A stretch of 64,000 nt of DNA, taken from the NCBI GenBank assembly GCA_002269645.1, contig NIVC01000099.1, positions 434,001 to 498,000 of the forward strand. Reading direction: 5' to 3'. Numbering within the stretch: the first letter of the stretch is position 1; every line of letters begins with the position of its first letter. The position numbers and the translations under genes were made by a program. A model generated the notes under the pieces. It was given only the letters and a program-made list of their open reading frames with translations, had not been told where the DNA came from and made no database searches. Shown here one piece after another: positions 13,946 to 60,000 of this stretch. Source of the DNA: Macrostomum lignano (Eukaryota).

Positions 13946-14028
13946 GAGGGAGAAAAGGACGAGATGGAGCCCAAACACACAAAGGTAAGCACCGCAGGCC
14001 CTCCAAAGCACCCGGTGCTAGAGCTCAC

Positions 14029-32597: not shown

Positions 32598-33827
32598 ATG
32601 CCACCAAAGAAAGTAGTGCCTACAGGCAAATTAACAAAGACAAAAAGTGCTTCAAATACTAGCAAACCAAAGACAAGGTCTACTACTAAAAACAAGGCAA
32701 ATAGTCAGCAAGTGCCATTATCATCAGTTGCTACTAAACACTTGTGTCCATCTAAAAGTGCTAATAACAGTGCTCAGCCAATCAAATCCGAGGTTGAAGC
32801 TCCTAAAATAGTAACTCAAACAAACCAAGAATGTGATTCAATTTCTGTTACAAATCCAGTAGACTATTCAAGGCCTAATCAATATCCAATTAACTCTTTA
32901 CCAGTTGCTAGTCATCTTTTGCAACCTATTGAATCTAAGTATCAAGCTATGCAAATTCAATTGCCGCCAATTCCAAAGCCAATGCCATTTAATGGAAAAG
33001 AAAATTTTGCGGATTTCCTATGCCGGATTGAAAGCTACATCAGTAGGTTTTCAAATTTAACTGAAGCAATTAAAATTCAAACTTTATCAGCATTCTTAGG
33101 ATCAGCATTTAGTACTTATCGCTCGTGGCTCTCAACTATTTATGTAACGCATGGTGTGCCTGTCAACACTCCATTAGAAAATATTCCAAATGTCACTTTC
33201 TTGGAATGCACAGAATTTCTCCGAGGCCGCCATGGTGAGAAAAGCAATGTTGTTCTACGCCGTGAACTTAGAAATCTATCTAGGAAACCAACAGAGACAT
33301 TTGAGCAATTTCTTACTGCTTTACAAAACCTGGCTATCCAGGCCTACCCAGATGCAATTGCTACTGAAGTTGTGCAAACCATGATCTTAGATCAGTTCAT
33401 AACTGGCATCAATGACCTCAAGGTCATGGAGCATCTATCAAATCTCACCAACTTGGAGACAGCAGAACAGGCCTTGCAGATTGCACAGCAAGTCCGTGAG
33501 ACACAGCAACTCTTAGCAAAAGCACCAGCGAGTAGTCAGCAAGTCTCTTTAGTACAGCCTGAAAGCCATCAAAACAAGCAATCGTTACCACCAAAAAGTA
33601 ACCAGCCACAACCAAAGTATCATCAGCAGCAAAAATTTACGCAGAACCAACCAAAGTCAAATCAGCCAGCAAATAACAACTTTCAGCAACAACAGAAATA
33701 TCCTAATCAGCAAGCAAGGTACCAACAGGTCACTTGCTTTAGATGTGGCCAACTTGGACATGTGCAAAGAGTGTGCCCAAACTTGATGCAGGCTGGATCA
33801 GGGGCCAGACCCCAGCCTTATCATTGA
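32598..33827 (+). CDS. gag: gag of element B, intact
   Basis: 409-aa ORF after the PBS, capsid-like region homologous to A gag, and CCHC knuckle CFRCGQLGHVQRVC. Confidence 0.9.
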   Translation: MPPKKVVPTGKLTKTKSASNTSKPKTRSTTKNKANSQQVPLSSVATKHLCPSKSANNSAQPIKSEVEAPKIVTQTNQECDSISVTNPVDYSRPNQYPINSLPVASHLLQPIESKYQAMQIQLPPIPKPMPFNGKENFADFLCRIESYISRFSNLTEAIKIQTLSAFLGSAFSTYRSWLSTIYVTHGVPVNTPLENIPNVTFLECTEFLRGRHGEKSNVVLRRELRNLSRKPTETFEQFLTALQNLAIQAYPDAIATEVVQTMILDQFITGINDLKVMEHLSNLTNLETAEQALQIAQQVRETQQLLAKAPASSQQVSLVQPESHQNKQSLPPKSNQPQPKYHQQQKFTQNQPKSNQPANNNFQQQQKYPNQQARYQQVTCFRCGQLGHVQRVCPNLMQAGSGARPQPYH

Positions 33828-36800
33828 GTGGCCCAAATTCTGAGGAGAAAGACCAAGTGCTAGAACCAGTAACTGTAAATGTAAACTGTATGTCAACTAA
33901 TGTTATGTATGTTTCTACTAAATTCTTTGGCAAAAATATTCCATGTCTAATAGATACTGGTGCTTCAGCTACAATCATAAATTCAAGTTTAATTAACAAG
34001 TCAAAGTACCAAGTAAGAGCTTCTAATGTCAAATTACAAGCTGCAAATGGTAAACAGCTTTCTGTATTAGGAGAAACGACAATCAAATTTAATTTTGGAG
34101 ATATTGTCTGTCAGCAAGAAGTCATCATCTGCAAAGACATTCAGCATTCAGTAATCCTAGGATGTGATTTCTTTACTAATTTCAATGTATCTATTCATCC
34201 AGCAGAAGGCATGATCACATTTAATAATCAGAACAGAAGTTTCCCAACTAGAAAAACAACAGAAGTTCAGAGAAGCTGCAAGATCATCGCAACTGAAACT
34301 GTCCAGCTAAAACCAGGACAAGCAGCAACTATTTCCATTGCACCAAAGATGTCAACTCAGTCAATGGCACCAGGACTAGTCCAGTCGAACAAAAGAATCC
34401 CAGGACTCTTGGCTGCTAGAACTGTTGATTTAATAAAGAATGAAGGCATGTACATCAATATTATCAACTCGAACTCGAACAGAGACCTGACCATCAAGAA
34501 AGGTTCGTTAGTTGGTTCCTTCACCCCTCTAGATTGCAGAGGAGAGACCTGCATTGTCGTCGAAGAAGTAGCAGATAAATCCGAGTCTGGTAGCAAAGAA
34601 GAGACTGAAGATGCAGAGAAAACATTCAAAATTTCTCCAGATCTCACAGAAGCTGAAAGGAAATCTGTTAGTGACATCCTAGATGAGTACAGCGACATAT
34701 TTTCAAGAGATGGCAAGCTTGGTCGAACTGCTTTACTGAAACACTCGATAAATACTGGCACAGCAATGCCTGTCAGAGAGACATTAAGGAGAGCAGCACT
34801 GCCAACCATCGAGGAGCAGGAGAAGTTGATTCAACAAATGCTTGATGATAAAGTCATTCAGCCGTCAACATCACCGTGGGCTGCACCTGTCATTCTGGTG
34901 AAAAAGAAGGACGGAAGCTCTCGTTTTTGCATTGATTTTAGAAAACTGAATGCTGCAACTAAACCTGATGCATTCCCTGTGCCAAGAATCGACGACATGC
35001 TAGATGCTTTAGCAGATAACGTTTACTTTTCTGCATTAGACTTGCAAGCAGGCTACTGGCAAGTAGAAATGGAAGAAAAAGATCGCGAGAAAACCGCATT
35101 TGTCTGTCACCATGGACTCTTTGAATTTAATGTTATGCCCTTTGGCTTACGCAATGCACCATCAACTTTTCAAAGACTCATCCAGATGGTTCTTCAAGGC
35201 TTAAATTGGGAAGCATGTCTAGCTTACATCGATGATGTTATTGTTATGGGTAAAACGTTAGATATTCACAACGAGAGACTCAAACAAGTTTTTGGACGAT
35301 TAAGAGCAGCAAATCTTCGTCTTAAACCTAGTAAGTGCAATTTTGCTGCCAAGTCGCTGAAGATTTTAGGTCATGTGATAACGCCTCAAGGAATAGCAGT
35401 AGACGATGAGAAGATTGATTCTATTAAGAGATGGCCAACACCAACGAATCAGAAAGATGTCAGAAGTTTCCTAGGCCTGTCATCATATTACAGACGATTC
35501 ATTAAAGACTATTCAAAGATTTCCGAGCCCTTAAGAGTGCTGACAACTGATAAGAAATTCATCTGGACCGACGAGGCAGAGCAAAGTTTCATTCGCCTTA
35601 AGTCCGCCTTAACATCGGCACCTATCTTAGCATTGCCAATAATGACAGGCGAAGACTCCGAATTTGTGCTAGATACTGATGCTAGCGACATTGCCATAGG
35701 ATGCGTTTTATCACAGCAACAGAATGGCGAAGAAAAAGTGATTGCCTATGGAAGTCGAGTGCTCAGCACCGCCGAAAAGAATTACTGCGTGACTCGCCGA
35801 GAACTACTAGCAGTAGTCTAGTTTGTTAAAAAGTTTAGGTCATATCTAGCGCCAAAGAAGTTTACAATCAGGGTAGATCACCAGGCGTTGACCTGCTTAC
35901 TACAGTTCAAAGAACCTAATGGCCAATTAGCTCGATGGATCGAATCTCCTCAGGAGTTCAACTTCGAGATACTCTACCGGCCAGGTAAACTGCATTCCAA
36001 CGCAGACGCTTTATCACGCAGGTGTACAAGACCGTGCGAATCTTGTCGACCTAGCAAAGCAATTTCAGATGCAGAATGTCAAACTGACGAAGATCAGACT
36101 GTCGCAGCTGTTTTGTCTAGAAGGAAACAAACGCTGGTTCCAAGGAAGTCCGAAAGTGAGGACGAAAGTGAGTTAATAGACGAAGCTGAGCAGAGTGAGA
36201 CTGAAGAGGAGCCGAGTATGCGTGCACTGCAGTTACAGGATCCAGGAATTGGACCAGTATTTCGGAAGCTAGCCAATGGAAAAACAGCGTTTGAAACTGG
36301 AGAACGAGATAGAATGTCACCAGAAAGTTTGAGCCTTATGTCCAAAGCCGACGAATTGTGCTTCGTTAACGGCGTAATGCATTATTTATTCAAGACTAAG
36401 CCTGTTCTAGTACTGCCGCAGTGTAAACGAGAAAGCTTCATTAAAGAAATTCATGAGTTAGGTCACTTTAGTGTCGAAAAGACAAGAACATCTGTCAGGA
36501 AGCGTGCCTACTGGCCAAAATTAGCCCTGGATGTTGAACTATTTGTCAGGTCATGCATTCCGTGTCAAAGATCTAGGCCAACATCAATCACTCGAGGCCC
36601 TCTGCAGCCGATAGCTACAGGATTTCCTATGCATCGCATTGGAATCGACATAGTAAAAGTGGCTACCTCGAGGCAAGGCAATAATCGATTGCTTACGATA
36701 GTCGACTACTTCACTAAGTGGGCCGAATTAATACCAATTCCTGACGAAAGGGCGAACACCGTTGCGAAGGCAATATTCGACGTGTGGATATCGAGATGGG

Positions 36801-37576
36801 GAGCACCGCATATCATTCACTCCGATCGGGGTAGCAACGTAGACGGCAAAGTCATCAAGAGTCTCTGCAAAATATTTGACATTCAAAAAACTCGCACTAC
36901 CTATTTCCATCCTCAGTGTGACGGTCTTGTGGAAAGATTCCATAGAACATTGCACAGCGTGCTACGATGCTACCTGCAAACGGTGGAACCCGAAGACTGG
37001 CAAGATGTTATTCCTTATTGCCTTCTGGCCTATCGAAGCACCGTCCACAGCAGTACCGGCTTTACGCCTCATTTCCTGATGACTGGGCGAGAAGTTACGC
37101 TTCCTCTTGATATTGTATATCGACTGGCTGAGCCGGCCAGCACTGCTGTAACTTTCGCCAGCTCCACGAAAGAGTCTCTATTGAAAGCATTTGAAGCTGT
37201 GAGAGAGTCTGTTGATTTAGCACAGCGCCGCCAGAAGAGATATTATGATGGAAAGTCCAAGAAAAAAGGGTTCAAGGTTGGATCATTGGTCTGGATTTTT
37301 ATCCCACCATCTGTCCTACGGCAGCGTGAACCTCGCTGGTCTGTCAAACACCACGCTCCGTGGACTGGACCTTTCCGCGTCACCCGGAAGTTGACCAGCC
37401 TGACCTATGAAGTGAAGTCGATTGACGAACATCAGAAAGTAAAGATCGTAAATGTAGAGAAGATGAAACGCTACATTGAGCCGCGTAGACAAGAAGGGTT
37501 GTGGCAAGACGAAGAGGCTGACGAAAGAGAACAAGAACCAGAAGAAAGCGTCGAAGAGGAATGGGTCATTGTGTAG
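33743..37576 (+). pseudogene. pol: pol of element B with in-frame TAG at 35819-35821 (RNase H)
   Basis: LIDTGA, YIDD, DTDASD, then ELLAVV*FVKKFRSYL continuing in frame into RNase H and integrase (HHCC, DDE, GPF). Confidence 0.92.
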
Positions 37577-41924: not shown

Positions 41925-42734
41925 CCCTTTAAAAGCGGATGAGCAAAATCACCAAGTAAGCTTGAAACCTCTTGACAAAAATTCAATAGCTAGCAGCAGA
42001 CAGTTACATCCTAGAAATAATGGCAGCTACGTTCATCACCGTGAAATCCAACTTTCATTCGAAGTTGTAGTCACAGTCTTAGAAAGAAAATATCAAATAT
42101 TTCCTTGAAAGGAAATGGCTTATTAAAAGTTTCTTTATCCCATTCTACTATTGGACCGGTAATTATCGTAGTACGACTAATTAAAAATCCCATTTTTCCA
42201 TGTTATCCCAACCAGGACTGAGTGAGATGTAGCTTGATACTGACGACTGAAGTGAGTGAGACGCTAATATGTTAGGATCCAATTGACAACCCATTTTGGG
42301 TCTTTAATTTTTTTGACGAGCTGATCCCAATAGTAAAAACTGTATAACGGTATTTAAGATATGCATGCGCACAAAATATCAGGTAGTAGAAATGGTTGCA
42401 TTGATACGGGTATACCATGTAATGCACGCTTGTAACATTATGAACATTTATTGTGCTAAGCTGTATTTTATAAGTTAAAGAGAACCGACTTTCATCTGCT
42501 TGAAAGCGACCTCATATGTTCGATTGAAATTATACAGGCTGAACAATGTCATTTTATTATTATAAAGGAACGCCACATCTGTAGACAGAATTCCTGCCTA
42601 GCAAAGACACCATCGTTTAGAAAAAGACGTCAGTTCATGTAGTTGATAATGACGTCACATGATAGATAAGAATGCTTACTGTCATATTTTGTAGTTGTAA
42701 CCAAATGTTAACCAATGGTGCCATCTGATAGATC

Positions 42735-43135
42735 TCACCTATCACCGTTTCCTTTGATACAACGTGAGTTCAGCGGAATCGATTCTTTGACGTCTTCGTC
42801 GGCTCCGTCGAGGCGTCGCTGTGCATCGAACTGATCAGCGGTCTGCATCGTCTGCAGAGCCATGGAGCTGCCATCGTTGCGGCCCCGTCGGGAGCCAGCA
42901 GCGGAGCAGCACAGCAGCTTCTGCAGCCGGTTGCCCAGCGGCGTGACTCTGAAGGCGCTCCGGAATTCGCTGTTGATGGCGAAGTAGGCCAGTGCGGAGG
43001 CCGCCATGCCACTCTTGGCCATCAGCAGCGCTAGGGTGGACAGCACCCGGTACAGTCGGCCTTCGAGATGCAACAAACCGGCGAAGCTGCTGACTGCCAT
43101 AGCAGAATAGGGCGTCCAGCACAGTAAGAAGGCGC
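42735..43135 (-). CDS. Divergent opsin, exon 4 (TM6, TM7 with retinal Lys, C-tail)
   Basis: CAG|GC acceptor completes the Gly begun in exon 3. AFLLCWTPYS...LALLMAKSGMAASALAYFAINSEFR contains the K296 equivalent. TGA at 42735-42737. Confidence 0.9.
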
Positions 43136-45069
43136 CTGGAGTGATGTAGGGATTGGCGAATACTGGAGTTGGTGCAGTGCAACTTCTGAGGTGCTGGATG
43201 AATCCTTGTACATATGCATTAAAGCTTCCGAGATGGGAAATGGCCAACCCCCAACAGAGAGCCCAGTGGTCAAGACTTAGCATTGCTCATTTTCTTAAAC
43301 TTAAGGTGCAGTCAGTCAGCGCTCTCGGCTAACTTTGAAATCTACTCCAACGCCCGTCGCCGAGAGGCTTTCGAGCTTTTCCAATTGCTTTTCCAGGCGC
43401 AATAAGTGCAGGGATCTGCAGTTTTTGCACCTGCTGAACTTTGCCCTGACTCTGATTGACTGTTATTCGGACCAGACTCTCTCATCTTCGACCACACACG
43501 CCTCCTGAGCGGCGGAAACCCTACGTTCTGAGCGGTCCGTCGGTTGTCCAGGGCCAGCGGAATGGGTGCTGGCCGCTTTCAGCTGCGTCTTTTGGCATCG
43601 ACACGGACTCACCTGGGCCGTCTCTCAGAGCGCCCTGCAGAAGGCCAAACAGAGCCCCAGCTTCAGAGTGTCTGCATGAGTGTCTCTTCCAATAGCGTCT
43701 TCCAGAGTACACCGCAGAAGCCTCAGAGTCACCAGCCACCCCCTCAGCCTCAGCTATGGAGAATTCTGTTAAATATTCCCTCTCGTGACACCGCTCTAAA
43801 ATATAGAAAAGTAAGCCCGATTTTCTCATAGACAGCGTACTTAAATTAGCAATTTTTTTCACTACAGCTGGCTTCACGGCTCTCACGAAGAAACTCGCAG
43901 CGCGATCGAAGCAAGCACGCCACGGAAACCATAAGACGGCGTTGCTTTATAACTCGCCTGCACTTGAAAAACACGTTATGAATTCAAACCTTTTTTGGTA
44001 CGCCTTATTTTGCCAGCCATATTGATCGATTGAAGCTCGAAAGCTGCAAGCGTTCCGTTGTTCATGCCACGACAGAGCTTGGAATTCGACCCATGAGAGA
44101 GGGTGTGGAAGAGGGAACGATAATTTAAGGAACACCACTAAGCTATAAGACGGGGTTCTAAGGCATAAATTCTGCCAAGTTTAGCATCAACTAGAGCGAA
44201 GGTTTTACTTTGGCTTAGGTTTTACCCATGGGGATCGATATGTCTACCCAACCTATTCCAATGCTCAGCATCGACAACCTAAGAATTTGAATGCTACAAA
44301 CAATCTCTCTGACTGTTTTAGCTCTCTTAGAGCGCCAAAATTTAGTTTTTAAATTAAGTCTACTTCGTGCACAGACTCTCTGTATGCAAGTCTTAACTTA
44401 TCAAGAAGCAACTTGGTTTTAATAGGGGATTAAGACCATCATCGTTTGCAGCTTTAGTGCAATCCTGAAGCGAGACTGAGGCATATGGCGCATAGGCCTC
44501 TCGAAGCCATTATTTCAAATTCAAATTGTCCAACAGAATTGAGCAGAAAGGTACGTCGTATAAACGTAGCCTTTAAAGTAGCTTTTAAAAGAAAAATAAC
44601 TTCTTTTTCTTGTTTCATGACAACAATAGCGGCCTCTTCCAGTCTTTAAAAAGTTCCAGCCCAATCCTCCTGGCAGCACTATCCTGCTCAGTTTGAGGAG
44701 CATTGCTACCCCCTCTTCCAGTCAGACAGTCAGAAGTTGCAGCAAGTCAAGCAAAACGTAGCTACCTGCAGTCCTTGATCACTGCCAATAATTACAGGCA
44801 CTAACTGCCGTGGATGCGCGCTCATTGTCTTGTCAATGTCATCGACACGGCGCCTTGCGTTACTTTTTAAGCGCGAAAGAGGATTCAAGAGCGCTCATCT
44901 GTTCATCTGCCTGGAATACCAAGCATTGTAATAACTGCTCCAAGTCTCCGTGTCCGTATCCGACATTACACGAGCTATTTTACTGTTTCAGTCAGGTATG
45001 TCCGCTATTAAGAAACAATGGAAAAGGCAGGCGCTACATTAGATGGAGAACTAACCGGTATTTTAGGTA

Positions 45070-45850
45070 CTGTTGGGTGCTGTTAGTGTTGTTGGGTGCT
45101 GTTGGGTGCTGTTGGGTGGTGTTGGGTGCTGTTGGTGTTGTTGGGTGCTGTTGGGTGCTGTTGGGTGGTGTTGGGTGCTGTTGGTGTTGTTGGGTGCTGT
45201 TGGGTGCTGTTGGTGTTGTTGGGTGCTGTTGGGTGCTGTTGGGTGCTGTTGGGTGCTGTTGGTGTTGTTGGGTGCTGTTGGGTGCTGTTGGTGTTGTTGG
45301 GTGCTGTTGGGTGCTGTTGGGTGCTGTTGGGTGCTGTTGTGTGCTGTTGGTGTTGTTGGGTGCTGTTGGGTGTTGTTGGGTGCTGTTGGGTGCTGTTGGG
45401 TGCTGTTGGGTGCTGTTGTGCTGTTGGGTGCTGTTGTGTGCTGTTGGTGTTGTTGGGTGCTGTTGTGCTGTTGGGTGCTGTTGTTGGTGTTGTTGGGCGC
45501 TGTTGGTGTTGTTGGGTGCTGTTGGGTGGTGTTGGGTGCTGTTGGTTCTGTTGAGTGATGTGGTGCTTTTGGGTGCTGCTATGTGCTGTTGGGTGCTGTT
45601 ATGTGCTGTTGGGTGCTGTTATGTGCTGTTGGGTGCTGTTATGTGCTGTTGGGTGCTGTTGGGTGCTGTTGGGTGCTGTTGGGTGCTGTTGGTTCTGTTG
45701 AGTGATTTGGTGCTTTTGGGTGCTGTTATGTGCTGTTGGGTGCTGTTATGTGCTGTTGGGTGCTGTTATGTGCTGTTGGGTGCTGTTATGTGCTGTTGGG
45801 TGCTGTTGGGTGCTGTTGGGTGCTGTTATGTGCTGTTGGGTGCTGTTATG
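45070..45850. repeat. 10-bp repeat (GGTGCTGTTG)n with variants
   Basis: Directly visible, opsin intron 3. Confidence 0.95.
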
Positions 45851-46468
45851 TGCTTCTAGGGTGCTTTTGGATGCTAATTGATTCAATAAGCCAAGTTTAC
45901 ATAGCATTGAAACGAGTATATTCGCCCAATAGATGTACTAGAAGGACTTTTAAAGCACGATTGAGATACCAAGTAAAGAAGCTCCTGTCTGCTGGTTGGT
46001 GCTCTATTATTTATGTAAGAAGTCCCCGTTAATGGTTGCTCTGTAAATTGGGCTGGAAATTGTCCGTCAATCTGCACAGATATGTGGTGGTAAAACTCTC
46101 AAGAGCTGCCTGAATTTCTCACTAACCAAATTCCCTTTGTTCAACTGCTCTTAGCGTTGGGTTTGCCTACCTTAAACTGAAGTAGGAAGCTGCTCAGGGA
46201 TCTCCATACTTCCAGCAGTATATCCTCAGGGCAGCTCACCCGATTTCCCACTTTGAATGCAAGATATTTTGCTTGATAACATGACTTGTTTCTTGCGCAA
46301 ACGAATCCACAATTATGGGTGTTTTGCTCTTTATTTTAAATAAATTCTTTCTTAATTCTAATTTCAAAATTATATGTATCTAATTTTTTTCCACAATTTT
46401 TGTTATTCACAGTTAATGAATTATTTATTTTAAATTACCATCCACGCAAAATGCCTTACCTTTCATGC

Positions 46469-46710
46469 GAAATGTCCTACCCGCCAAGTGAAATGTCCTA
46501 CCCGCCAGGCGAAATGTCCTACCCGCCAGGCGAAATGTCCTACCCGCCAGGAGAAATGTCCTACCCGCCAGGCGAAATGTCCTACCCGCCAGGCGAAATG
46601 TCCTACCCGCCAGGCGAAATGTCCTACCCGCCAGGCGAAATGTCCTACCCGCCAGGCGAAATGTCCTACCCGCCAGGTAAAATGTCCTACCCGCCAGGCG
46701 AAATGTCCTG
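46469..46710. repeat. 21-bp minisatellite (GAAATGTCCTACCCGCCAGGC)n
   Basis: About 11 units. Confidence 0.95.
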
Positions 46711-47328
46711 TACCCCCCAAAGCACATTTGTTCTAGGGCAAATTATCTTTGGGCAAAATGTCAGTAATTCTGCATAATGAGCTCCGGTTTTCATTACGTC
46801 AAGCAACAAAATTAGGGAAGTTCGGGTAATTTTTTAAATCCGATCGCGTCTGAAAACCGACTTTGCTGAAATTTTGCTGACGAAGTGAAATGCGCGGGCG
46901 ATGCAGCCACCCAAAGTCAGCAGCACGCAAACTAGATAAAGGCATCATGCTGACATTTATAATTTTTTGAGTCTAACATCTCTCTGTCACGGTCGTCAAC
47001 AGAGTTGAGATGAAATTGAAATTTCTGTAGCGATCGCCGTGCAGCAAGCAAGCTGCTGGACAGTCGGCATGCAGCCATCCGGCTTCTGTAATTCTACACT
47101 GACTGGCTGCTCACGCTCCCGAAATTTTGCTTTAATTACACAGAGCTATTTGCTTGCGTTTTTGCTTGAAGGCAGCTCTGCGTTAATAGCTACTCGAATC
47201 GCGTGAGCAATGTTTTGGCCTTGCAGTCTTCTTGGCTGCGACAGGAATAAATAATTTTTTGTGAGACATCTTAGCAGAGAGAAAGTAACTGTGTATACGT
47301 AGTTATAAACAATGATTTCTAAAATAGA

Positions 47329-48475
<1,147 letters not shown>

Positions 48476-48545
48476 TGGGCAAGGGTGACCCCAACACAGC
48501 CGGTCGGGCGGCCAGAGCCAGAGGCTGGCAGACGTCGCAGCTCAC

Positions 48546-48639
48546 CGATGATGGCGAGCACGTGAATGGCGAACTTCCTGTCCCTCCTGGCCTGGCTGGA
48601 GCTCGCGGCCAGCAGCCCGGAGCTGCGGTGCCGTCGGAT
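48546..48639 (-). CDS. Divergent opsin, exon 3 (ICL3 and start of TM6)
   Basis: TTGCAG|ATC...: IRRHRSSGLLAASSSQARRDRKFAIHVLAII-G|GTGAG. 94 nt, phase 0 in and phase 1 out, matching the neighbouring exons. Confidence 0.85.
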
Positions 48640-48994
48640 CTGCAATGAATTTCCGGATTGTCATCTGTTGGCTTCGGCTTGCTGACAGTTTTACGAGTAA
48701 AGTACATCTCTGACAGTCAGCCCAGTGCATCCAAAGCGGATTAGCATTTAACGCAGAATCCATGCTTGTAGCAGCTTTGGCTTCTATCTAGTCCGGAAAT
48801 TAATTGTTTCACCCCACGGAAAGTGACTCGTGCTTTGCCAGTGCAATGCATTTACAGAGGCAATTTTCGTATTCACTAAGTCACTATTTCAAATTATTGC
48901 AAAACTCCGAATAACAAATTTTTGTATGGTGAATCTGGAATCCTAACTTCAACTGACCATCGTTCTCATCCACTCAACGGAATTAAAATTTTAT

Positions 48995-49775
48995 CAGGTC
49001 ATCCTGACACAGCATCCATCATCTAGACCTCACCTGACACAGAATCCATCATCTAGATCTCACCTGACACAGCATCCGGCATCTCGATTTCACCTGACAC
49101 AGCATCCGGCATCTCGATCTCACCTGACACAGCATCCTGCATCAAGATCTCACCTGACACAGCATCCTGCATCAAGATCTCACCTGACACAGCATCCGGC
49201 ATCCAGATCTCACCTGACACAGCATCCTGCATCTCGATCTCACCTGACACAGCATCCGGCATCCAGATCTCACCTGACACAGCATCCGGCATCTCGATTT
49301 CACCTGACACAGCATCCGGCATCTCGATCTCACGATCTCACCTGACACAGCATCCTGCATCTCGATCTCACCTGACACAGCATCCGGCATCCAGATCTCA
49401 CCTGACACAGCATCCGGCATCTCGATTTCACCTGACACAGCATCCGGCATCTCGATCTCACGATCTCACCTGACACAGCATCCTGCATCTCGATCTCACC
49501 TGACACAGCATCCGGCATTCAAATCTCACCTGACACAGCATCCGTCATCCAGATCTCACCTGACACTGCATCCGGCATCCAGATCTCACCTGACACAGCA
49601 TCCGGCATCCAGATCTCACCTGACACTGCATCCGGCATCCAGATCTCACCTGACACTGCATCCGGCATCCAGATCTCACCTGACACAGCATCCGTCATCC
49701 AGATCTCACCTGACACAGCATCCTGCATCCAGATCTCACCTGACACAGCATCCGGCATCTCGATCTCACCTGACA
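48995..49775. repeat. 30-bp minisatellite (GATCTCACCTGACACAGCATCCGGCATC..)n
   Basis: About 26 units in opsin intron 2. Confidence 0.95.
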
Positions 49776-50302
49776 CAGCTGCTGGTCTTTTTCTGAGGCA
49801 ATCTTATCTCTTTTTAAAGAAACTCACCCTAACTGACGCACCGTCTATCCCAGGTTTGCCATCTTGAGTTTAGAACTAACAGATTTAAAAGCGATAAAAA
49901 TCAGTTTTCAGAACTAATTTGAACCCTCCCTAAAAACGCAGCCAAAGCAACTCAGACCAGGCATAGCTAAAAGCAGACAGACAGAAATGAGGTTCCCATG
50001 ATGAATCCTTAGCACTATTAAAGAAAGTATTCTTCCAGGCAGCTAGAATAGGCGGATAGATAAGCCAGAGGCTTATCTGTCACGGACTGTGCCTATATTA
50101 ATGCCATCAATAATATATTTATTCACTAGGTGCGTCTCCGGCAAAAGCCCGACTCAAATTCCGCCTAGTAGAAAAGGAGCTCTGCTAGCTGCGAATGTTC
50201 CTGGTTCGAGCATCAGCTGGTGACTGAAATTATTTAATCATAGGAGTATTAAACTTAGGCGCAAGACATTTGACTCTCTACTAACGTATTGCAATGGGAG
50301 AT

Positions 50303-50427
50303 TATACATACGGTACTAGAGGTAAACAATAAGCAAAATCACGAGTGGCGTAGCCACGATCACTCGTGGCTAAACGATAGCCACGAGTGATCTTTGCTTA
50401 TTGTTTAACGATAGTACCGTATGTATA
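50303..50427. mobile_element. Palindromic MITE-like element
   Basis: Terminal TATACATACGGTACTA..TAAACAATAAGCAAA is mirrored at the right end, with possible TA TSD. Inner perfect 15-bp stem at 50358-50372/50378-50392. Confidence 0.7.
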
Positions 50428-52084
50428 GACTTATTGTCACTATCGTTTAGCATACTCGACTAGAAGCATTGTAATTATACTTTTACCCAGACGCAATGAA
50501 AAAATATTTTGGCCATTATTCCACAGTTTTGATGTGTACCATAGACATTTGGATTGAAAAAATCCATCGCTCAGTATTTTTGTTAATAAATACAGAACAA
50601 CAAGAAGTGAATGAACAAAAAGGAAAAATCATTAAAACTAAAGTACCAGCTACACGAAAAGAGTTAATAATAAATGTCACAGCTAGTGCAGTTTATCAGT
50701 TTGTAGTCGAAATTTGACAATGTAAAAATCAATTTGTCACCCAAAGTGAAACATGCACAGTTCTCAAAGCCGCAGTTTCCAAAGATGCTCGACACTTTAG
50801 CCTGATGATTTGGCACTGCAAAAGGAGTTGGTCTATGTTGAATGTTTTCTATGAAAGAGGAATACTGGTGCTCAAGTATAGTTGCCGAACTTACCATTTG
50901 AAAGATGCACGACTTGGTTAAGTTGGCATGCGACTGATGAGCTTCGTCTGATGAGCTTCTTTGGTACCGCAGTATCCAAGCTGGGATTCTTTGGGACTGT
51001 CGGCTGCTCGACTGAATCGATTCACCGCTTTCAGGCATCGTTTATAGCCGTCGAGGCGTTGAAGACTGCATGGTCGCGTTTTCTTCCTAGGTAGTGCCGC
51101 ACGGTTCGTTCAGTCGTCGACAGGAAGATTTTTTCAATTAATAAGCGCGGCTGTTTGACGAGATGCACTATAGCCATAGTTATGGTCAACTAAGCCACAC
51201 AACTCAGTCGTCTATGGGTAAAACAACTCTTAAAACAGCCAATTGAAGCATGATAAAAAGTGTGGAATAATGACAGCGACAAAAGTGTGGAATAATGGCC
51301 GCAAAAGTGTGGAATAATGACTGAGCGCTGAGTGAAAGTATAAATACAATGCACTTGTATAGTATGCAACTTCGTTGAATAATGGCCATAGACACTCGTG
51401 CGCTACGCGCACTCGAGTTTTGGCCATTATTCAACTCAGTTGCATACTATACAATCTACCATTGTTTAACGCTGAAGCGTTGTTTAACGCCGATTGTTTA
51501 ACGATGTCTCAGCGAATCAGAAACGTCCTAGACTGCGCAGGTTTTGGCCATAGACATCGACAACGACATCGACACTGCCATAGGAAGCGCTATGGAGCGA
51601 TTCCAAGTGTACCATAGACTATCGAGTGAATATAGAGTAGAGAAAAGCAGGGGACTGTGGCTTGATATAAGCTTGCTTGCTTTAACATCAACCACTAAAA
51701 TGCATCTAATAAATTGGAAAAATCTGCCTACTGATTCTCTTAACGGAGTGTCTTCAAGCGAAATGGATTTCCTTTCTCTGCTGAGTGCAACCGACCACGC
51801 TGGCGACGCTGACCTAGCGGAGTTCACCCGTTTCTTAGAAGATCCTACGATGGATGACCATTCGGTTCTGGATACAACCCCTACCGGATATATCAGATGA
51901 CGCTCCTCTCACGGGAGAAGATATGTGATTTGATAAATGGTGATTTGTCATAACAATTAGCTAATTGCTTTTAATGCTTCACTACACACATTTTAAAATG
52001 CATTCTATGTTTTTTATATGCTTGGTTTTGTTAAAGTGTGTGCTTAAATGGGTATTCTGTTTCTCTGTACTCAATTTGGTGACA

Positions 52085-52900
52085 TGTGTATGTAAAAATG
52101 CATATTCTACGTTTTTCTATGCTCTCAATTTGTTTAAATGTATGTAAAAATGCGTGTTCTACGTTTTTCTATGCTCTCAATTTGTTTAAATGTATGTAAA
52201 AATGCGTATTCTACGTTTTTCTATGCTCTCAATTTGTTTAAATGTATGTAAAAATGCGTGTTCTACGTTTTTCTATGCTCTCAATTTGTTTAAATGTATG
52301 TAAAAATGCGTGTTCTACGTTTTTCTATGCTCTCAATTTGTTTAAATGTATGTAAAAATGCATATTCTACGTTTTTCTATGCTCTCAATTTGTTTAAATG
52401 TATGTAAAAATGCATATTCTACGTTTTTCTATGCTCTCAATTTGTTTAAATGTATGTAAAAATGCGTATTCTACGTTTTTCTATGCTCTCAATTTGTTTA
52501 AATGTATGTAAAAATGCGTGTTCTACGTTTTTCTATGCTCTCAATTTGTTTAAATGTATGTAAAAATGCGTGTTCTACGTTTTTCTATGCTCTCAATTTG
52601 TTTAAATGTACGTAAAAATGCATATTCTACGTTTTTCTATGCTCTCAATTTGTTTAAATGTATGTAAAAATGCGTGTTCTACGTTTTTCTATGCTCTCAA
52701 TTTGTTTAAATGTATGTAAAAATGCGTGTTCTACGTTTTTCTATGCTCTCAATTTGTTTAAATGTATGTAAAAATGCGTGTTCTACGTTTTTCTATGCTC
52801 TCAATTTGTTTAAATGTATGTAAAAATGCGTGTTCTACGTTTTTCTATGCTCTCAATTTGTTTAAATGTATGTAAAAATGCGTATTCTACGTTTTTCCAC
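52085..52900. repeat. 52-bp minisatellite (TGTATGTAAAAATGCGTGTTCTACGTTTTTCTATGCTCTCAATTTGTTTAAA)n
   Basis: About 15 units. Confidence 0.96.
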
Positions 52901-53389
52901 GCTCAATTTGTTAACGCACAGTTTGTGTTAAAATGCGTATTTAGTTCATCTATGCTTTTTGTTTTGTTCATCCATGTATTTGTTAGCGCATGTGTTAAAA
53001 TGCGTAGCTTTCCTATGATTTTCTATTCCTAATGTTTTTCATGCATTGAACGTTTAGTACAATACATATAAAATAAATTGTCTATGGCAAAATTTTCAAT
53101 CATCGTTAAACAATCAATCTTTGACTGAAGCGTTGTTAGTGTGGTAAACCATAGTAACAATAAATCCTTGGAAATACTGACTTTGCCTAGCATGGTTTCA
53201 GCTCAAATGCTCAGAGCCAATCTTTTACTAATGAGTAAGTACACCGTCTAGGCATCTTAATCCCATTATGCAATCCTGGACTAGCTATATGCATCACTAG
53301 AATCAAAGCGTCAAGAACTCAAGAACGACTTGAGACTGTCAGTCACACTAACTTTCGCATTTAATCCACAACTGATCTTCACAAAACTC

Positions 53390-53800
53390 CACAGACATGC
53401 TCCACTGACATCCTGCACTGATATCCTCCACTGACATCCTCCACTGGCATCCTCCACTGACATCCTCCACTGACATCCTCGACAGACATCCTTCACTGAC
53501 ATCCTCCACTGACATCCTCCACTGACATCCTCGACAGACATCCTTCACTGACATCCTCCACTGACATCCTCCACTGACATCCTCGACAGACATCCTTCAC
53601 TGACATCCTCCACTGACATCCTCCACTGATATCCTCCACTGATATCCTCCACTGACATCCTTAACTGACATCCTCCATTCTCCACTGACATCCTCCATTC
53701 TCCACTGACATCCTCCATTCTCCACTGACACCCTCCAATGACATTTTCCATTCTCCACTGACATCCTCCAATGACATTTTCCATTCTCCGCTGACATTCT
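53390..53800. repeat. 13-bp minisatellite (ACTGACATCCTCC)n
   Basis: Directly visible, next to the opsin exon 2 donor. Confidence 0.92.
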
Positions 53801-53866
53801 CCACCCTCCACCAACATCGGACAAAGCATAGCAAAACCTGTAAGCTTCACTACCGCCTTCAAGCAC

Positions 53867-54218
53867 CTGCCAGCTACGTACGTGCATGAAAATCGCCGCA
53901 TAGGAAGCCGCGATGACCGCCAGAGGCAGCAGAAACTCCCCAACCAGCAGGCTGACCAGGTAGGCCCGGTCGCCCGGCCGGCCGCTCTCCCAGTCCAGGT
54001 CGCAGGCGGCCACGTGACTGACCCGACGGACCCTGGCGACGCCGAACATCGGTGGCAAACTCCAGGCGGCGCCGATGGTCGCGCAGGCTACGACTAGGGC
54101 GAAGGCGTGCCAGTTGTCGAACGGCCGGTTCCGGGTGACCATTCGGCACCGCAGAGCGGACAGCCCGGCCAGCAGGTTGATGTTAAACAGGCCGATGGCA
54201 CAGGTGCTGAACACGTAC
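53867..54218 (-). CDS. Divergent opsin, exon 2 (TM3-TM5)
   Basis: TTCCAG|G TAC completes Trp. YVFSTCAIGLFNINLLAGLSALRC...AWSLPPMFG...ACDLDW...FLLPLAVIAASY. Phase-0 donor at 53866 (an alternative GTACGT donor at 53881 is also in phase). Confidence 0.9.
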
Positions 54219-55481
54219 CTGGAAATCGAAACTTGTTGATGGCATCTGCAGCCGCCTCTTTACCCCCAGCTTTGATTAAAGCAAGATTAATAACAAGGAC
54301 AAGAAGGAGATTAATAGGATTGCGTTCACGATTGAATGAGGCACGATTAGTTATAAAGCAAAGCTGCTTAAAGTCGGGATTAAGTCGAAGCTGCCTTTGA
54401 TCGCGGGGGTTGCAAGAAAAAATGGATCAGGTCGCTTGCGAGTCTCTGTCTTAATGCGATCCCGCGTGTTCTTCGTTACAAAGAAACGGCTAGCTTAACA
54501 AGAGCGCTTTAACAGTCTGGAAACCACTTACAGGTGGATTACATGGTTGGCTGAAGAATCGTATCATATGTTGCATTTTCCTAGCACCATTAGACTCGAT
54601 GTTTTATGTAGTTCTGCTTTTACGCACTGTAGCTGCTGTTGTGAATTATAGGGCATGACTGACGCACATCAAAAACATACGCAGTCCTTTACTTGTGTTC
54701 AATGGCTGTGTCGAGCTCCACTGCTTCTGCTCTCTACGAGTACTTAGCTTTGATAGCGGTGAATTTAAACTGAAGGATGTTTTGTGTATCAGATTAAACA
54801 TGCCTTTTGAGGGAGTTATTTGTATAAATCACGAGGGTCTGAGTTATTTGTAATCTCGTATAAACCATAGACATAAAGACTTTACGAGATATTATTGAAT
54901 ATTACCAAATAAAATCCCGGAGAACGCAAATATTGTCCCGGAAAGTCTTTATTTCTATGGATTATATCTTGCTAGAGAACATACTTGGCGCAGAATGGGC
55001 CCGAACCGATTGTTTTTTTGTCTAGGGCACAATCTATTATTTTATAATAAAGTAGTTACGACATGCATCCCAAGAGGAGTTACGCAAGCGGAGCAATACG
55101 ATAGCTCAAACCGCTTAAGTTAATTATTTGTCTTCCTAACTTAACCAGTAGACTTAGAGCTACAGGTCGGAGCAGAAGACATAACAGGATGCCATCATGA
55201 GAATCTCATGAGAGCGGGGGTCAGAGAGTAATTCAGTACTTAATGCATCTGACTCTCGCCCATGTGGACCAATCTTGGACTTATTAATATACGAATAAGT
55301 GACCAGCCCCAAGGCACAGAGTGTGTACCTTCCCCACTATGAGAAAGTAAAAAGTGCCCAAGGCTGTTGTTGGCTGTGGGTCGACTATCGATCGCTTTTT
55401 GATTTGTGGCAACCGGCTCCCTCAAACTAACTAATTGTCTGACAGGGAAAGGTCGTGCATGGTTTACCAGCCTCAACTCAC

Positions 55482-55780
55482 CAGTAGCACCAGCCGATGT
55501 GGAAGGCCCATTCGCCAGCCAGCCAGGCGGAGGTGAGATTCAGTGACGCGGCCACCAGCACGCAGATGCAGTTGCCTAGGAAACCGGCGCACAGTACCAG
55601 CATGGATGGATTGCGCAGCGACTGCGAGGCCAAAATGTTGTATGCCGACAGAGCGTTGGAGGCGAAGCTTACGACGAACACGACGGTAAACCAAGTGGCG
55701 TTGGCGCAGTGACCCCAGCTGATGTTGGTTGGAAAGTCAGTGTAGTTACTAGGAGGAGTTGCTCCGTTTGCCGAACTCAT
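55482..55780 (-). CDS. Divergent opsin, exon 1 (N-terminus, TM1, TM2)
   Basis: MSSANGATPPSNYT...VSFASNALS...SLRNPS...GEWAFHIGWCYW, with phase-2 donor TG|GTGAGT. The four exons total 1146 nt (381 aa plus stop). An upstream in-frame ATG at 55822 is possible. Confidence 0.88.
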
Positions 55781-57010
55781 TGCGCCAGCTTCTCTGTGAT
55801 GGGTCTCAAGATGACCCAGCATGACAATAGCTGCAGATCAGGCGATGGCCCAGAAGAAGAGGATAATCAAAGTCAAGCCCAATCCGGCAGTCTTTAGAAA
55901 CACCGCCGTCTGATTGGCTGGCCGATGCGTTAGTAGCATGGACATTTTCCATTAAATGCCTTTCCCTCCGGAGCCTTGAAATTTTTAAAACTCATCCCGA
56001 GGCCCGAGATAGGTCTTTATCGAGATCGGCAAAGGGGAAGTAAGAAATTTGAAGTGGAAGAAAAGAGAAGAAAACTCTGATTTGGGAGATTGGCTTACCT
56101 GTTAAGATATCCTAGCTGCTTGGGGCACTGATACTGGTACCTGGTACCACCAACTTTTCTTCCGTTTTGAGGTAAGGCACCCTTGGGTCCTGCTTTCCCA
56201 GCCTTGCTGCTGTTTCCATGCAGCAAATAGGCAAATCTGATCGAGAATAACTTTTATTTATTCTTGCCATTCCTTCAATCCGACTTATTTCTATGTGTAC
56301 TTTGCAGCCTGAACTTCTCAGTGGTCATTCTGTCCAATATTATAACCCTAAAAATAGCCAAAAACGTGTCGAAGAAAAGTTATATTTCGTCGTTGTGTAA
56401 GTGCAGCTCTGTTGGCTAACAGTAACATGTCCTAATTATGTGTACGTGGGTTGCCTGTAGCCCATCTAATCCACATGCATTTCCTGCTGAAAAAAATTGT
56501 AGTCAGCAGACTGCTTAATTTGATGGCACTTGATTTCGAAGCAATTTCAAGTCCTGGAATATTCGATTTAATAAACTATTTTACATGCAAATATGAGCAC
56601 ACTGTTCAAAAATTTTCGAGTTGTAAAATTTATTTGATGAGTCAATAACTCCAAAAAAGCCTCATGTACAGACAGATAAAGTACATTAAAATATTTTTTT
56701 TAATTGGTTCATCAGAGAATAGGAAATTTGGGTTCGACCCACTATCGTCGAATGAATCTGTATCGTGTAGTTACAAGCAAAGGTCTACTTGGTTACCAAT
56801 TGTATGTATACACTGTGTGTTACGTTCACTGTAAAACAAAATCTTTACCAAACCCTTGCGTGTACAAATGCATGTATGTACATATCCAGGCGCGTCGCCA
56901 CCGGGGGGGGGGATGGACATGTCCCATCCCCAGTAAAAGCTATGGGGGACATGCCAATGCTTCGTCCCCCCACCCCACCTGCATATGTAATTGTGGCCCA
57001 TTATGGTAAT

Positions 57011-60000
57011 TGATGTAGAGACTATTGATTGACTGAGCTGTCTATGGTTTAAGCTTTTATGCTATCGTTCAGTGCGCGGCATCGCTTTATTTCAATAAAA
57101 TATACATATACAATAAAATATAAAACATGGCGTCCCATAGCAGCGATTAACTGCCAAACGCTTTCGTGACAGCTACTTAGCGACCATGATGTCGCCAACT
57201 AAAGCCCTACAGCAGTCACCAACCAAGTCACCACCATCGGCACCAACAAAAGCTCCTCCACCGGAGAGGCTAACGAGCCGAGATGAGTCAGCGCGGAGAA
57301 TTTCACTCCCGGGTCTACAGATCCCTCGCTTAGACCTATCCACAGACACGCTGGATGAGTTCGACGCGTGGCGTGCAACATTTGAGGCCTACTTCGAGGC
57401 TATTAGAGCAGCTGATCTCCGCCATAATGGCGTTGTACTGTGCTACGAGAGCAGCTGTGATGACGCCGGACGGCCTGTCGGACTCTTCGAGACATCCTCC
57501 GGGGTGCACCAGGGGGACACTCTAGCGCCGTTCCTGTTCGTCTTGGTGCTTGACTGGGTGCTACGAACTGCTCTTCCTACCGACGAAGATGGCTTCCTAC
57601 TGCGGCGACGCGTAGGTCAACGTCAACCGGAGAAACGGCTCAGCGTGCTTGGCTACGCCGATGACCTCGCCCTGCTGTCCTCGACCGCAGAGGGCGCCCA
57701 GCGCCAGCTGGACAAGCTGTTTAGCGCTGCAGCGAGCATCGCCCAGGTGGTCAACACGAAGAAGACCGTTGTGCTCTGCGTGCCGGCGACATCGAAGCCG
57801 CAATTTTCTGCCGAGGCGCTGGCGGGCAGGTAACGGAGCTTCCGCGCTGTCAGCAGTTCGTCTACCTCAGCGGTCTGGTACCTGACGTCCGCAAAGATCT
57901 GCGGCGTCGCCGCGGGCTCGTTTGGGCTGCCTTTCGCTCTGTGAGGGCGGTCCTGCAGTCCGAGGCCCTACCTGACCGCCAGAGGGCGGCGCTGTTCCAG
58001 GCGGTGGTCGAGACCGTTCTGTTGTACAACGCCGAGACCTGGACGCTGACGGATTCGCTCGAACAGCAAGTCAACGCGGCGCACGCTGGCCTGCTGCGCG
58101 CCGCCTTTAAGATCAGCGACGAGCAGATCACTATCGCGGCACTCAATCGCCGCGCCGGCCTGGCCCGTCCAAGTGAACTGCTGCGACTTCGGCGACTCCA
58201 GCTGGCAGGCCACATCATCCGCGCCGAGTCCTACTGCCCGCAGCCGGTGCAGGAGGTGCTGCTGCTAACGTTGCAGGCACCCTACCGGCGCGGCCAGGCC
58301 CGAACTCGGCGTTTCATCGACTGCCTGCTGGCCGACGCTGGCGCCCCGGACTCTGCCGGCGGTGCGGCCTTTGTTCGCGCCCAGGCTCTGAAGCGTGCCC
58401 TGTGACGCTGCTTTTTTCCACCTGACAGCGTACTTTGCTGTTGTTGTTGTTGTTGTTTTTGTTGTTGTTCGAGGCTATGGACATTAACAACCTCGCAAGT
58501 GACAGCCGGGCTATTGCAGGTCAGAAAAAAGCCAGTCGCAGAGCTTGCATGCTCAGCGAATTCTCAGCAGCCACGTTCTGCAAATACCAGAACCTTGCCC
58601 TGTCCGAAAAAAGAGCTGAAAGACCCCGAAAAAGTCATCAAAGCGCTTCGAGAGCATTTGACGGGCCAAGTCAATATAATAGTAGAAAGAAACCGCTTCT
58701 GGAGACGACAGCAAAAGGACGGAGAAACATACAACGAATATTTTCTTGAGCTACGAAATTTAATGAGAACATGCCAATCCTGTGAACACTCAGACGACCT
58801 TCTGAGAGATAAAATCTTACTCGGAGTTAACAACTCAGAAACAGTGAAGAAGCTACTGGCTGAGCCGACCCTCACTCTCGCAGGAGCCCTACAAGTATGC
58901 AGAGCCGAGGAGGCGAGGATATTGGATCCTAAGCTTGAAATGGTACGCAACAGCTACAAATCCGCACATGCAAGACTTGATCAGTGTGATAATGGCCGGA
59001 TTTCCTCAAAATAAACAGGATTTACTCGAGCACCTAAGACCATACTGGCAAGTACGTGAAAAGCTTTCAGTGGAAAATGGTGTTATACATTTGTACTATA
59101 TGGATGCAGATGCGTGATACCGAAATCACTGCGCCGAGAAATGCTCTCACTGCTGCACTCCAGTCATCAAGGTACCGCCAAGACAAAGCAAAGAGCTCGC
59201 ATGATCCTTTTCTGGCCGAATATGGATAAAGAAATTGAGGACTACGTCAACAACTGTAAATCATGTCGGAAAGTTTTGCCATCACAAGTTCGAGAACCAA
59301 TTAAGATTAGAGATCTGCCAACGTGATGTTTTCAAGAAGTCCATGGAGATATTTCTGCGAGTATGGTGGAAAAAAGTATCCCGTGATCGTGGATGGTTAC
59401 TCGGGCTGGCTTAGTATCTTAATATCTTAGTATCTTAGAAACAACCATGCACCAACACACAAATTGTTCAACGCTTGCAGGGAACTGTTTAGCCAAACAT
59501 CGGTACCCGAAAAATTTTGGTGTGACTCAGGACCACAATTCAAAGCCGAAGCATTCCTAAACTTTCTGAAACGATGGGGAGTTGAGGCCTGTTTCTCCTC
59601 TCCGCACTATCATCAGAGAAACGGCAAGGCAGAAGCAGCAATCAAAACAGCCAAGAAGATCATACGTGGATCCTGGGACACAAGAACTGGTGACATAGAC
59701 AAGGACGAGTTGGTCGAGGGGATATTGCAATATCGGAACACGCCTATGTACGGACGGGCGAGGCCCCGACATTCTCGTCTTTGGTAATCCAGCACGGGAC
59801 TCGCTGTCTGCTCACCGCAGATATTTTACTCCCGAATTGGCACAAGACTGCAGCCGAGCTGGAAGCCAAAGCAGCGGAAGTGCATGAAAAAGTTGTTCAC
59901 AGCTACAACAAGCGATTCCTGTCAAGGATGCCTAACAACATCGCTTGGCAAGAACAAGCGATTCCTGTCAAGGATTCGGATTGGAACCGAAGTCATGGTG

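Follow-up and report, generated by a model that had tools for sequence, protein, structure and literature searches.

In this study we analysed a 64,000-nucleotide stretch of the Macrostomum lignano genome (positions 434,001 to 498,000 of contig NIVC01000099.1, assembly GCA_002269645.1), referred to below as the window, and found that it carries a real and intact four-exon gene for a G protein-coupled receptor (GPCR) of the opsin family, whose frame has been kept through a very long divergence. The gene very probably belongs to the xenopsin lineage and not to the tetraopsins, an assignment for which the gene structure is decisive. The protein retains the retinal lysine K296 (bovine rhodopsin numbering is used throughout), and in our alignments no acidic residue stands at positions 83, 90, 94, 113, 181 or 292. 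The best overall explanation, which we consider probable, is a xenopsin-lineage retinal pigment without an acidic counterion and with atypical coupling. Judged by its sequence, what is new is a macrostomid xenopsin-lineage gene without an acidic residue at 181, as D188 is already known from chaopsins and degenerate motifs from flatworm xenopsins.

The gene lies on the minus strand (55822-42735), and its coding sequence of 1173 nt specifies 390 amino acids in an uninterrupted frame. All three introns are of the GT-AG type with compatible phases. Coding exon 1 (55482-55822) was recognised by its alignment to transmembrane helices (TM) 1 to 3 of opsins and by a GC content at third codon positions (GC3) of 0.69 compared to about 0.5 in the flanks. 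It contains the N-terminus with the glycosylation sequons NYT and NIS, TM1, TM2 and extracellular loop (ECL) 1, including the codons of N83 (55573-55571) and C110 (55489-55487), and ends with CYW in phase 2 at the donor TG/gtgagt. Exon 2 (53882-54218, GC3 0.86) covers TM3 to TM5 and carries the codons of Y113 (54217-54215), of LRC in the place of E/DRY (54154-54146), of V181 (54022-54020), C187, D188 (54001-53999) and E211 (53938-53936). It ends at FMH/gtacgt in phase 0, at the equivalent of bovine residue 229, and this donor is confirmed by public models of the same protein (P0151/P0001). The short exon 3 (94 nt, 48546-48639, GC3 0.94) encodes intracellular loop (ICL) 3 and the N-terminal half of TM6, namely IRRHRSSGLLAASSSQARRDRKFAIHVLAII and the first base of the G259 codon, followed by the phase 1 donor G/gtgagc. 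Exon 4 (42735-43135, GC3 0.72) supplies the rest of TM6 (CWTPY), TM7, helix 8 (NSEFR), a CC palmitoylation pair and the tail; here lie the codons of W265 (43118-43116), K296 (43016-43014) and SALAY (42998-42984) and the TGA stop (42737-42735). Intron 1 (1263 nt, 54219-55481) interrupts the codon of W112 in phase 2, intron 2 (5242 nt, 48640-53881) follows residue 229 in phase 0, and intron 3 (5410 nt, 43136-48545) lies within the G259 codon in phase 1. Downstream of the stop codon, the nearest AATAAA lies 176 nt away (42553-42558, minus strand); it matches the motif of a polyadenylation signal and is a candidate for it.

The locus is represented in GenBank by PAA90994.1 (P0151), a partial model of 251 amino acids named "hypothetical protein BOX15_Mlig015728g1", which agrees exactly with our exons 2-4 and their junctions, including both ends of exon 3 and the start of exon 4, and which begins at an internal methionine in exon 2. 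The first-pass annotation, made from the letters of the DNA, had likewise described four exons, and this part of its gene model stands. The open frame immediately 5' of the exon 4 acceptor (43283-43136, ending in VFANPYITPG) has to be taken out, since its GC3 of 0.47 contrasts with 0.69 to 0.94 in the four exons and the frame is therefore intron; values in the flanks range from 0.37 to 0.57. ICL3 and the start of TM6 come from the 94-nt exon 3 instead. Besides, the start codon proposed at 55780 is usable and would yield 376 amino acids, but an in-frame ATG at 55822 lies 14 codons upstream, with an in-frame TGA five codons 5' of it. There are also two UniProt fragments. One of them (P0152) differs by two substitutions, G to S and R177 to G, and we therefore regard it as a second genomic copy. 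Over the stretches that were compared, 11.4 kb spanning the gene and the 2358 nt upstream of it, the window was exactly identical to the deposited contig. No second opsin gene was found in the 64-kb window, and the gene was not mentioned in the literature searched.

The protein was recognised as an opsin in several searches. It matched Pfam 7tm_1 (E = 4e-12), and its 30 best sequence matches in the PDB were all opsins (5e-9 to 2.3e-4), with the first non-opsin at 6.5e-4. In an exhaustive phmmer search against 1.84 billion cluster representatives the one cluster above 50% identity was the protein of M. lignano itself. The next match, and the closest outside the species, was an amphioxus c-opsin (32% identical, 2.7e-18, 82.7 bits), followed by Owenia xenopsin3 and then by other lophotrochozoan opsins; K296 was present in 96% of the library hits that cover TM7. 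AlphaFold2 predicted seven TM helices together with helix 8 and a hairpin in ECL2 (predicted local distance difference test 84.9, predicted template modelling score 0.80) and the top 23 PDB matches of this model in Foldseek were opsins, although this support is circular in part, as the alignment used as input consisted of opsins. A word-indexed search with the protein alone returned no match, not even its own GenBank model, and one with a 60-sequence profile returned 10 matches; since it missed the protein's own cluster (P0001/P0151), which the exhaustive search and a look-up of the cluster both recovered, the negative result is weak evidence. An intact frame after such divergence would hardly be neutral, as stop codons should have accumulated, and together with the exon-specific GC3 this argues against an old pseudogene. 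Moreover, the conservation of K296, A295, W265, Y268, F261, G121 and the C110-C187 pair suggests that the chromophore site has remained under selection.

Residues were assigned in three alignments, namely a HMMER alignment to PDB rhodopsins, a MAFFT alignment of the 150 best library hits with bovine rhodopsin, and an L-INS-i alignment with curated opsins. All three agreed on N83, C110, Y113, L134-R135-C136, V181, C187, D188, D190 and K296 as well as on S302-A-L-A-Y306, N310-S-E312, F313-R314 and the CC pair after helix 8. The first-pass annotation had read a retinal lysine without a canonical counterion, with Tyr at 113 and Val at 181, together with N83, D188, LRC for (D/E)RY and SALAY for NPxxY, and each of these assignments was reproduced; the peptides that it quoted were all located on the minus strand of the window. 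Proper alignment brought no acidic residue to 113 or 181: the segment between P171/G174 and C187 has no gaps in the alignment, and V181 is therefore not an alignment artefact. Several of these residues are rare. Among 143 opsin hits, position 181 was occupied by E or D in 97% and by V in 1%, and D188, L134, S302 and A303 were each found in 2%. Position 178 was Y or F in 100% and position 175 was W in 89% of these hits; the M. lignano protein has valine at both. Its ECL2 strand (G-V-A-R-V-R-R-V-S-H-V-A-A-C-D-L-D-W) places three arginines and one histidine around position 181. Conserved residues comprise N55, C110, G121, R135, P171, G174, C187, D190, P215, Y223, F261, W265, P267, Y268, A295, K296, Y306, F313, R314 and the CC pair. 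A VxPx-type motif, VTPL, directly follows helix 8 (42936-42947, minus strand), and near the C-terminus no VxPx was found, only SIPL. In xenopsins the ciliary-targeting VxPx is normally located at the C-terminus (Rawlinson 2019), as are the corresponding motifs of c-opsins.

The lineage assignment is based on the introns, which we mapped exactly in seven annotated genes and express as bovine-equivalent residue and phase. The M. lignano gene has introns at W112/2, at 229/0, six residues after Y223, and at G259/1, six residues before W265. For Owenia xenopsin3 (a curated name) we mapped 147/0, 229/0 and 259/1, of which the last two fall into the same alignment columns as in M. lignano. The same holds for the last two introns of Mya P0004 (109/1, 172/1, 229/0 and 259/1), and Pinctada P0018 has 229/0 and 259/1 and no other introns. 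P0018 and P0071, a relative of P0004, are 44-74% identical to curated xenopsins, and for P0004 itself the identity to its best match among the curated xenopsins is 39%. According to Vocking et al. 2017, two introns of conserved phase are common to all xenopsins, the first lying near a c-opsin intron without ever coinciding with it and the second being unique. The 229/0 intron of our gene is offset by three codons from the 232/0 site of c-opsins, as described for xenopsins. In contrast, none of the c-opsin, neuropsin, peropsin-like and r-opsin genes mapped has either of the two introns. The amphioxus c-opsin has 48/1, 121/1, 184/0, 232/0 and 312/0, and none of the three conserved c-opsin introns (121/1, 232/0 and 312/0) occurs in the M. 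lignano gene; in bovine rhodopsin the introns are at 121/1, 177/0, 232/0 and 312/0. The amphioxus neuropsin (48/1, 117/2, 145/1, 200/1 and 252/0) and the nemertean peropsin-like gene (48/1, 100/0, 145/1, 184/0 and 252/0) share 48/1, 145/1 and 252/0, none of which is found in M. lignano, and a molluscan r-opsin has 11/1, 64/2 and 109/1. Therefore, we assign the gene to the xenopsin lineage. The intron at W112/2 is lineage-specific and was common to none of the mapped comparison genes.

Sequence scores are consistent with this assignment. The best score of all was obtained with Stylochus xenopsin A, a polyclad protein whose labelled sequence comes from Rawlinson et al. 2019, and at 90.9 bits it exceeded the best match from the large library (82.7 bits). 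With hidden Markov models (HMMs) built per clade, only the c-opsin and xenopsin groups exceeded the non-opsin baseline; the r-opsin score fell below it, and the tetraopsin-type groups (neuropsin and peropsin-like) scored lowest. At residues 310-312 the protein has N-S-E, which matches neither the xenopsin NxQ nor the r-opsin HPK/HPR; flatworm clade-B xenopsins have LPE in our alignment. Vocking 2017 described NxQ as typical of a broadly distributed xenopsin subgroup and the motif as considerably different in other xenopsins. The second-best library match, P0003 (E = 5e-16, with E113/E181 and LRY), was considered as a close relative and dropped, as its open reading frame (ORF) is truncated. This ORF lies at 10001-10822 of an ENA metagenome contig (ERZ26273219), contains a duplicated ECL2 segment and adjoins a Tc3-type transposase and polinton-like genes with a double-jelly-roll capsid; no exon for TM6-7 was found within 10 kb of it.

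Several observations weigh against the proposed pigment and its lineage. All three public models begin at the internal methionine of exon 2 and thus do not contain exon 1, and no member derived from Logan or other transcripts was present in the protein cluster. We infer that exon 1 and the exon 1-2 junction belong to the gene from the opsin homology over TM1-TM3, the splice phases and the GC3. The protein is about equally distant from all compared sequences (1.8-2.0 substitutions per site), and in trees made by neighbour joining (NJ) and by approximate maximum-likelihood (ML) placement on an NJ backbone (BLOSUM62-derived rate matrix, four gamma categories) it attached to the stem of the non-opsin GPCRs when these were included, which we read as long-branch attraction. 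After removal of the non-opsins the weight was spread over several branches within about 1-3 log-likelihood units, among them a nemertean peropsin-like opsin, xenopsin branches and an amphioxus c-opsin. Since the placements were diffuse or affected by long branches, our classification is not based on trees. A general opsin HMM gave 203 bits, as low as for non-opsin GPCRs. We discarded this score as a test of descent because the comparators were well-conserved aminergic and GPR161-like receptors, which score high on any class-A profile. Of the diagnostic residues, only 3 of 28 were shared with flatworm xenopsin B and 1 of 31 with xenopsin A, and these counts were rejected as a tie to either clade because they were not significant. 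Moreover, the intron comparison outside the xenopsins was confined to c-opsin, neuropsin, peropsin-like and r-opsin genes. All xenopsins examined have E or D at 181 where the M. lignano protein has valine, and relative to these the loss of the acidic residue is, by alignment, the unique part of its sequence. Finally, the conserved W175 and Y178 of ECL2 and P291 and P303 of helix 7 are replaced, which could equally be read as the loss of a normal retinal pocket.

How such a protein would work can be outlined tentatively. K296 may still bind retinal, with a Schiff base that is either unprotonated (ultraviolet (UV) or violet) or protonated with help, a scheme to which we give somewhat less than an even chance. 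Retinal binding is suggested because K296 and pocket residues were kept through extreme divergence. As no acidic residue occupies any established site, the simplest expectation would be an unprotonated Schiff base and UV or violet absorbance. Alternatively, a solute anion might be held by the unusually basic ECL2 strand with R177, R179, R180 and H183; long-wave cone opsins bind chloride at 181/184. As a third option, the side chain of D188 could help protonation from the ECL2 hairpin. On the cytoplasmic side, L134 would take away the acidic lock of E/DRY, and S302 and A303 in place of N and P of NPxxY would alter the helix 7 switch. For these reasons we expect coupling to be atypical, that is weak, constitutive-leaning or slow, but not necessarily absent, and it might be directed to Gi/Go as in other xenopsins. 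Xenopsins have been described as bistable pigments that couple to Gi/Go; the Maritigrella xenopsin drives Gi signalling despite its DPxxY, and bovine rhodopsin with the P303A mutation kept 141% of wild-type activity. Accordingly, degenerate motifs are not proof of a non-signalling photoisomerase. For macrostomids, the literature describes putative ciliary photoreceptors but reports no opsin of these cells, and published surveys contain neither a xenopsin nor a c-opsin from this group. This type of photoreceptor is a plausible site of action. The most specific proposal, that the gene encodes the missing pigment of macrostomid ciliary (phaosome-type) photoreceptors, a xenopsin without a protein counterion that would be UV-sensitive or chloride-dependent via its Arg/His-rich ECL2, appears rather unlikely. 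The options of the first-pass annotation, a pigment that is UV-absorbing, anion-dependent or uses D188 as counterion, a photoisomerase or a light-independent sensor, would not be separated by the amino acid sequence alone.

Among the rival explanations, we consider a light-independent receptor unlikely. Here K296 would be a leftover in a xenopsin-derived GPCR that has given up photoreception and now senses chemicals or temperature or serves as an orphan receptor or scaffold. Such roles of opsins have been discussed in the literature, and the idea would agree with the replacement of retinal-plug and switch positions (W175V, Y178V, E181V, S186A, P291A, N302S, P303A and E134L), the opsin-HMM score at non-opsin level and the very long branch. 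However, opsin lineages known to have abandoned the binding of retinal have usually lost K296, the gluopsins being an example, whereas here K296, A295, W265, Y268, F261, G121 and C110-C187 survived a divergence of about 70-75%. An even more distant possibility is a class-A GPCR that is no opsin by descent and has a lysine at 7.43 by chance. The NJ and ML placements at the non-opsin stem and the low opsin-HMM score are what this would predict, but the comparators match aminergic receptors and GPR161 best, while for the M. lignano protein the 30 best matches in the PDB and the majority of the top library matches are opsins. It also has the xenopsin-specific introns, CWxPY, AK(S/T), the N..FR of helix 8 and the C110/C187 bridge, so that a descent outside the opsins is scarcely credible. 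We also attach a small probability to a decaying or non-functional copy in the recently duplicated genome of M. lignano. Degenerate motifs, partial public models, a cluster without transcript-derived members, introns swollen with minisatellites and the second copy P0152 with R177G would all fit, but the frame of 390 codons is intact over four exons with canonical splice sites, GC3 is high in the exons only, and a frame and seven-helix fold preserved through extreme divergence imply purifying selection over a long time, although the gene may have lost its function very recently or lack expression.

Two further alternatives accept a retinal protein and differ in its function. The first-pass annotation had suggested a tetraopsin-like pigment and, with the altered motifs of RGR and retinochrome in mind, possibly a photoisomerase, which would bind all-trans retinal and would not signal. 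The derived NPxxY and E/DRY (compare NAxxY in RGR and V/YPxxY in retinochrome) and one top ML placement beside a nemertean protein automatically named peropsin, which has P292, point in this direction. Against it, the protein has L292 instead of the chromopsin P292 and lacks E181, the counterion of retinochrome and peropsin; it has no intron in common with the neuropsin and peropsin-like genes but both xenopsin introns, and its per-clade HMM scores are lowest for these very groups. The analogy to RGR and retinochrome is also not needed, as flatworm xenopsins degrade the motifs independently and carry DPxxY, DSxxY, YPxxF, LRH and SYY. The term tetraopsin-like is therefore not retained, and we regard the photoisomerase as very improbable. 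The other alternative is an ordinary visible-light pigment in which D188 serves as the counterion and stabilises the Schiff-base proton from strand beta4 of ECL2. Residue 188 contacts the polyene, as known from Cys188 of Opn5L1. D188 is rare (2% of the opsin hits) and lies on the predicted hairpin strand beside C187, and sea-urchin chaopsins repeat the combination of Y113, A181 and D188, so that D188 as such is not new. However, most opsins with D188 keep E181, including the Patiria chaopsin, P0011 and P0032, and D188 is thus not by itself a replacement for E181; no spectroscopic characterisation of any chaopsin was found in the literature searched. We consider this role of D188 improbable.

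The window consists of eukaryotic DNA rich in minisatellites and retrotransposons. Within intron 3 we found a 10-mer repeated 83 times (45066-45875), a 21-mer repeated 12 times (46467-46709) and 192 copies of AGAGTG (47326-48477), an array that starts 69 nt after the exon 3 donor. Intron 2 harbours a 30-mer repeated 25 times (49003-49779), a 52-mer repeated 16 times (52087-52912) and a 13-mer repeated 22 times (53387-53818). In the window, 1-5 kb and 13-18 kb are likewise filled by similar arrays. A young and apparently intact Ty3/gypsy long terminal repeat (LTR) retrotransposon occupies 25581-31717 on the plus strand, with LTRs of 338 bp that are 99.7% identical (25581-25917 and 31380-31717), gag-like ORFs and a subsequent ORF of 1371 amino acids comprising protease, reverse transcriptase, RNase H and integrase. 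A second gypsy-like element on the same strand (32598-37576) is broken into three ORFs (gag with a zinc knuckle; protease, reverse transcriptase and RNase H; integrase), and megablast found no LTR pair for it. Just upstream of the opsin gene lies a reverse transcriptase fragment (57186-58405, plus strand, RVT_1 E = 5e-10), probably the remnant of a non-LTR element. Besides, an ORF on the minus strand (14025-14396) is rich in RGG at its N-terminus and contains part of an RRM domain (E = 5e-6); it probably belongs as an exon to a neighbouring gene for an RNA-binding protein. No tRNA genes were found in the window.

Xenopsins are central to the debate on the evolution of ciliary and rhabdomeric photoreceptors, and a xenopsin-lineage gene in the genetically tractable M. 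lignano would offer a candidate pigment for macrostomid ciliary cells that can be tested by transgenesis and RNA interference. A protein with K296 and without acidic residues at 94, 113, 181 and 292 amounts to a natural experiment in tuning a Schiff base when no residue serves as its counterion, and it complements the coral opsins with their chloride counterion and the uncharacterised sea-urchin chaopsins with A181 and D188. If it is indeed a ciliary pigment free of a counterion, it would be the first bilaterian example of a state so far shown only in the coral ASO-II opsins. If the gene is unexpressed or its product unable to bind retinal, it would merely be a fast-evolving orphan GPCR. Moreover, our analysis illustrates that intron positions are able to classify opsins that are too divergent for sequence trees.

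Of the known systems, the flatworm xenopsins are the closest, for instance that of Maritigrella crozieri (MK598846) and the polyclad clades A and B (Vocking 2017, Rawlinson 2019), which have the same two introns at the same codon and in the same phase. As in xenopsins, N310 and F313-R314 are present in helix 8, and the host is a flatworm. The clade-B xenopsins of flatworms share L134, E211-F212, E312 and the loss of W175, P291 and P303 with the M. lignano opsin, and in them LRH or SYY replaces DRY. Their NPxxY is variable as well, with DPxxY in the clade A of polyclads, YPxxF in triclads and DSxxY in clade B. The identity to xenopsins is nevertheless only about 25-30%, and M. lignano has the additional intron at W112. 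The clade-A xenopsins of polyclads and triclads all carry D94 in addition to E/D181, and the M. lignano opsin has N94; we take position 94 to be the site of the box-jellyfish opsin counterion. RGR and retinochromes, for which little or no signalling is assumed, resemble our protein in having a derived NPxxY, but they keep P292 and E181 with the variants NAxxY and V/YPxxY, and the tetraopsin gene structures that were mapped differ. The amphioxus c-opsin XP_019648011 (P0046) was the sole other opsin of the 143 hits to combine V181, Y113 and K296. This c-opsin has SRY and NTxxY, and the c-opsin genes that were mapped, P0046 not among them, have other sets of introns.

The sea-urchin chaopsins (Sp-opsin5, W4XTI7, and Lytechinus ops5) have Y113, A181, D188, D190 and K296, in agreement with the M. 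lignano opsin except for A181. Chaopsins differ in their canonical NPxxY, in FRY or YRY and in their deuterostome or cnidarian hosts, and of 15 diagnostic residues one (D188) is shared. The sea-urchin chaopsins also lack both canonical counterions and carry Asp188, while a starfish chaopsin keeps E181; no comment on the A181/D188 combination was found in the literature searched. Finally, the coral ASO-II opsin Antho2a of Acropora tenuis also has K296 without an acidic residue at 94, 113 and 181, and the ASO-II-like matches P0059 and P0121 show an unusual E/DRY as well (IMC and ISY). ASO-II opsins are cnidarian-specific and unrelated to our gene by introns and sequence, with 2 of 32 diagnostic residues shared. 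In ASO-II the counterion of the dark state is solute chloride, and E/D292 helps in chloride binding and is the photoproduct's counterion. The coral protein keeps this acidic residue at 292, whereas the M. lignano opsin has leucine.

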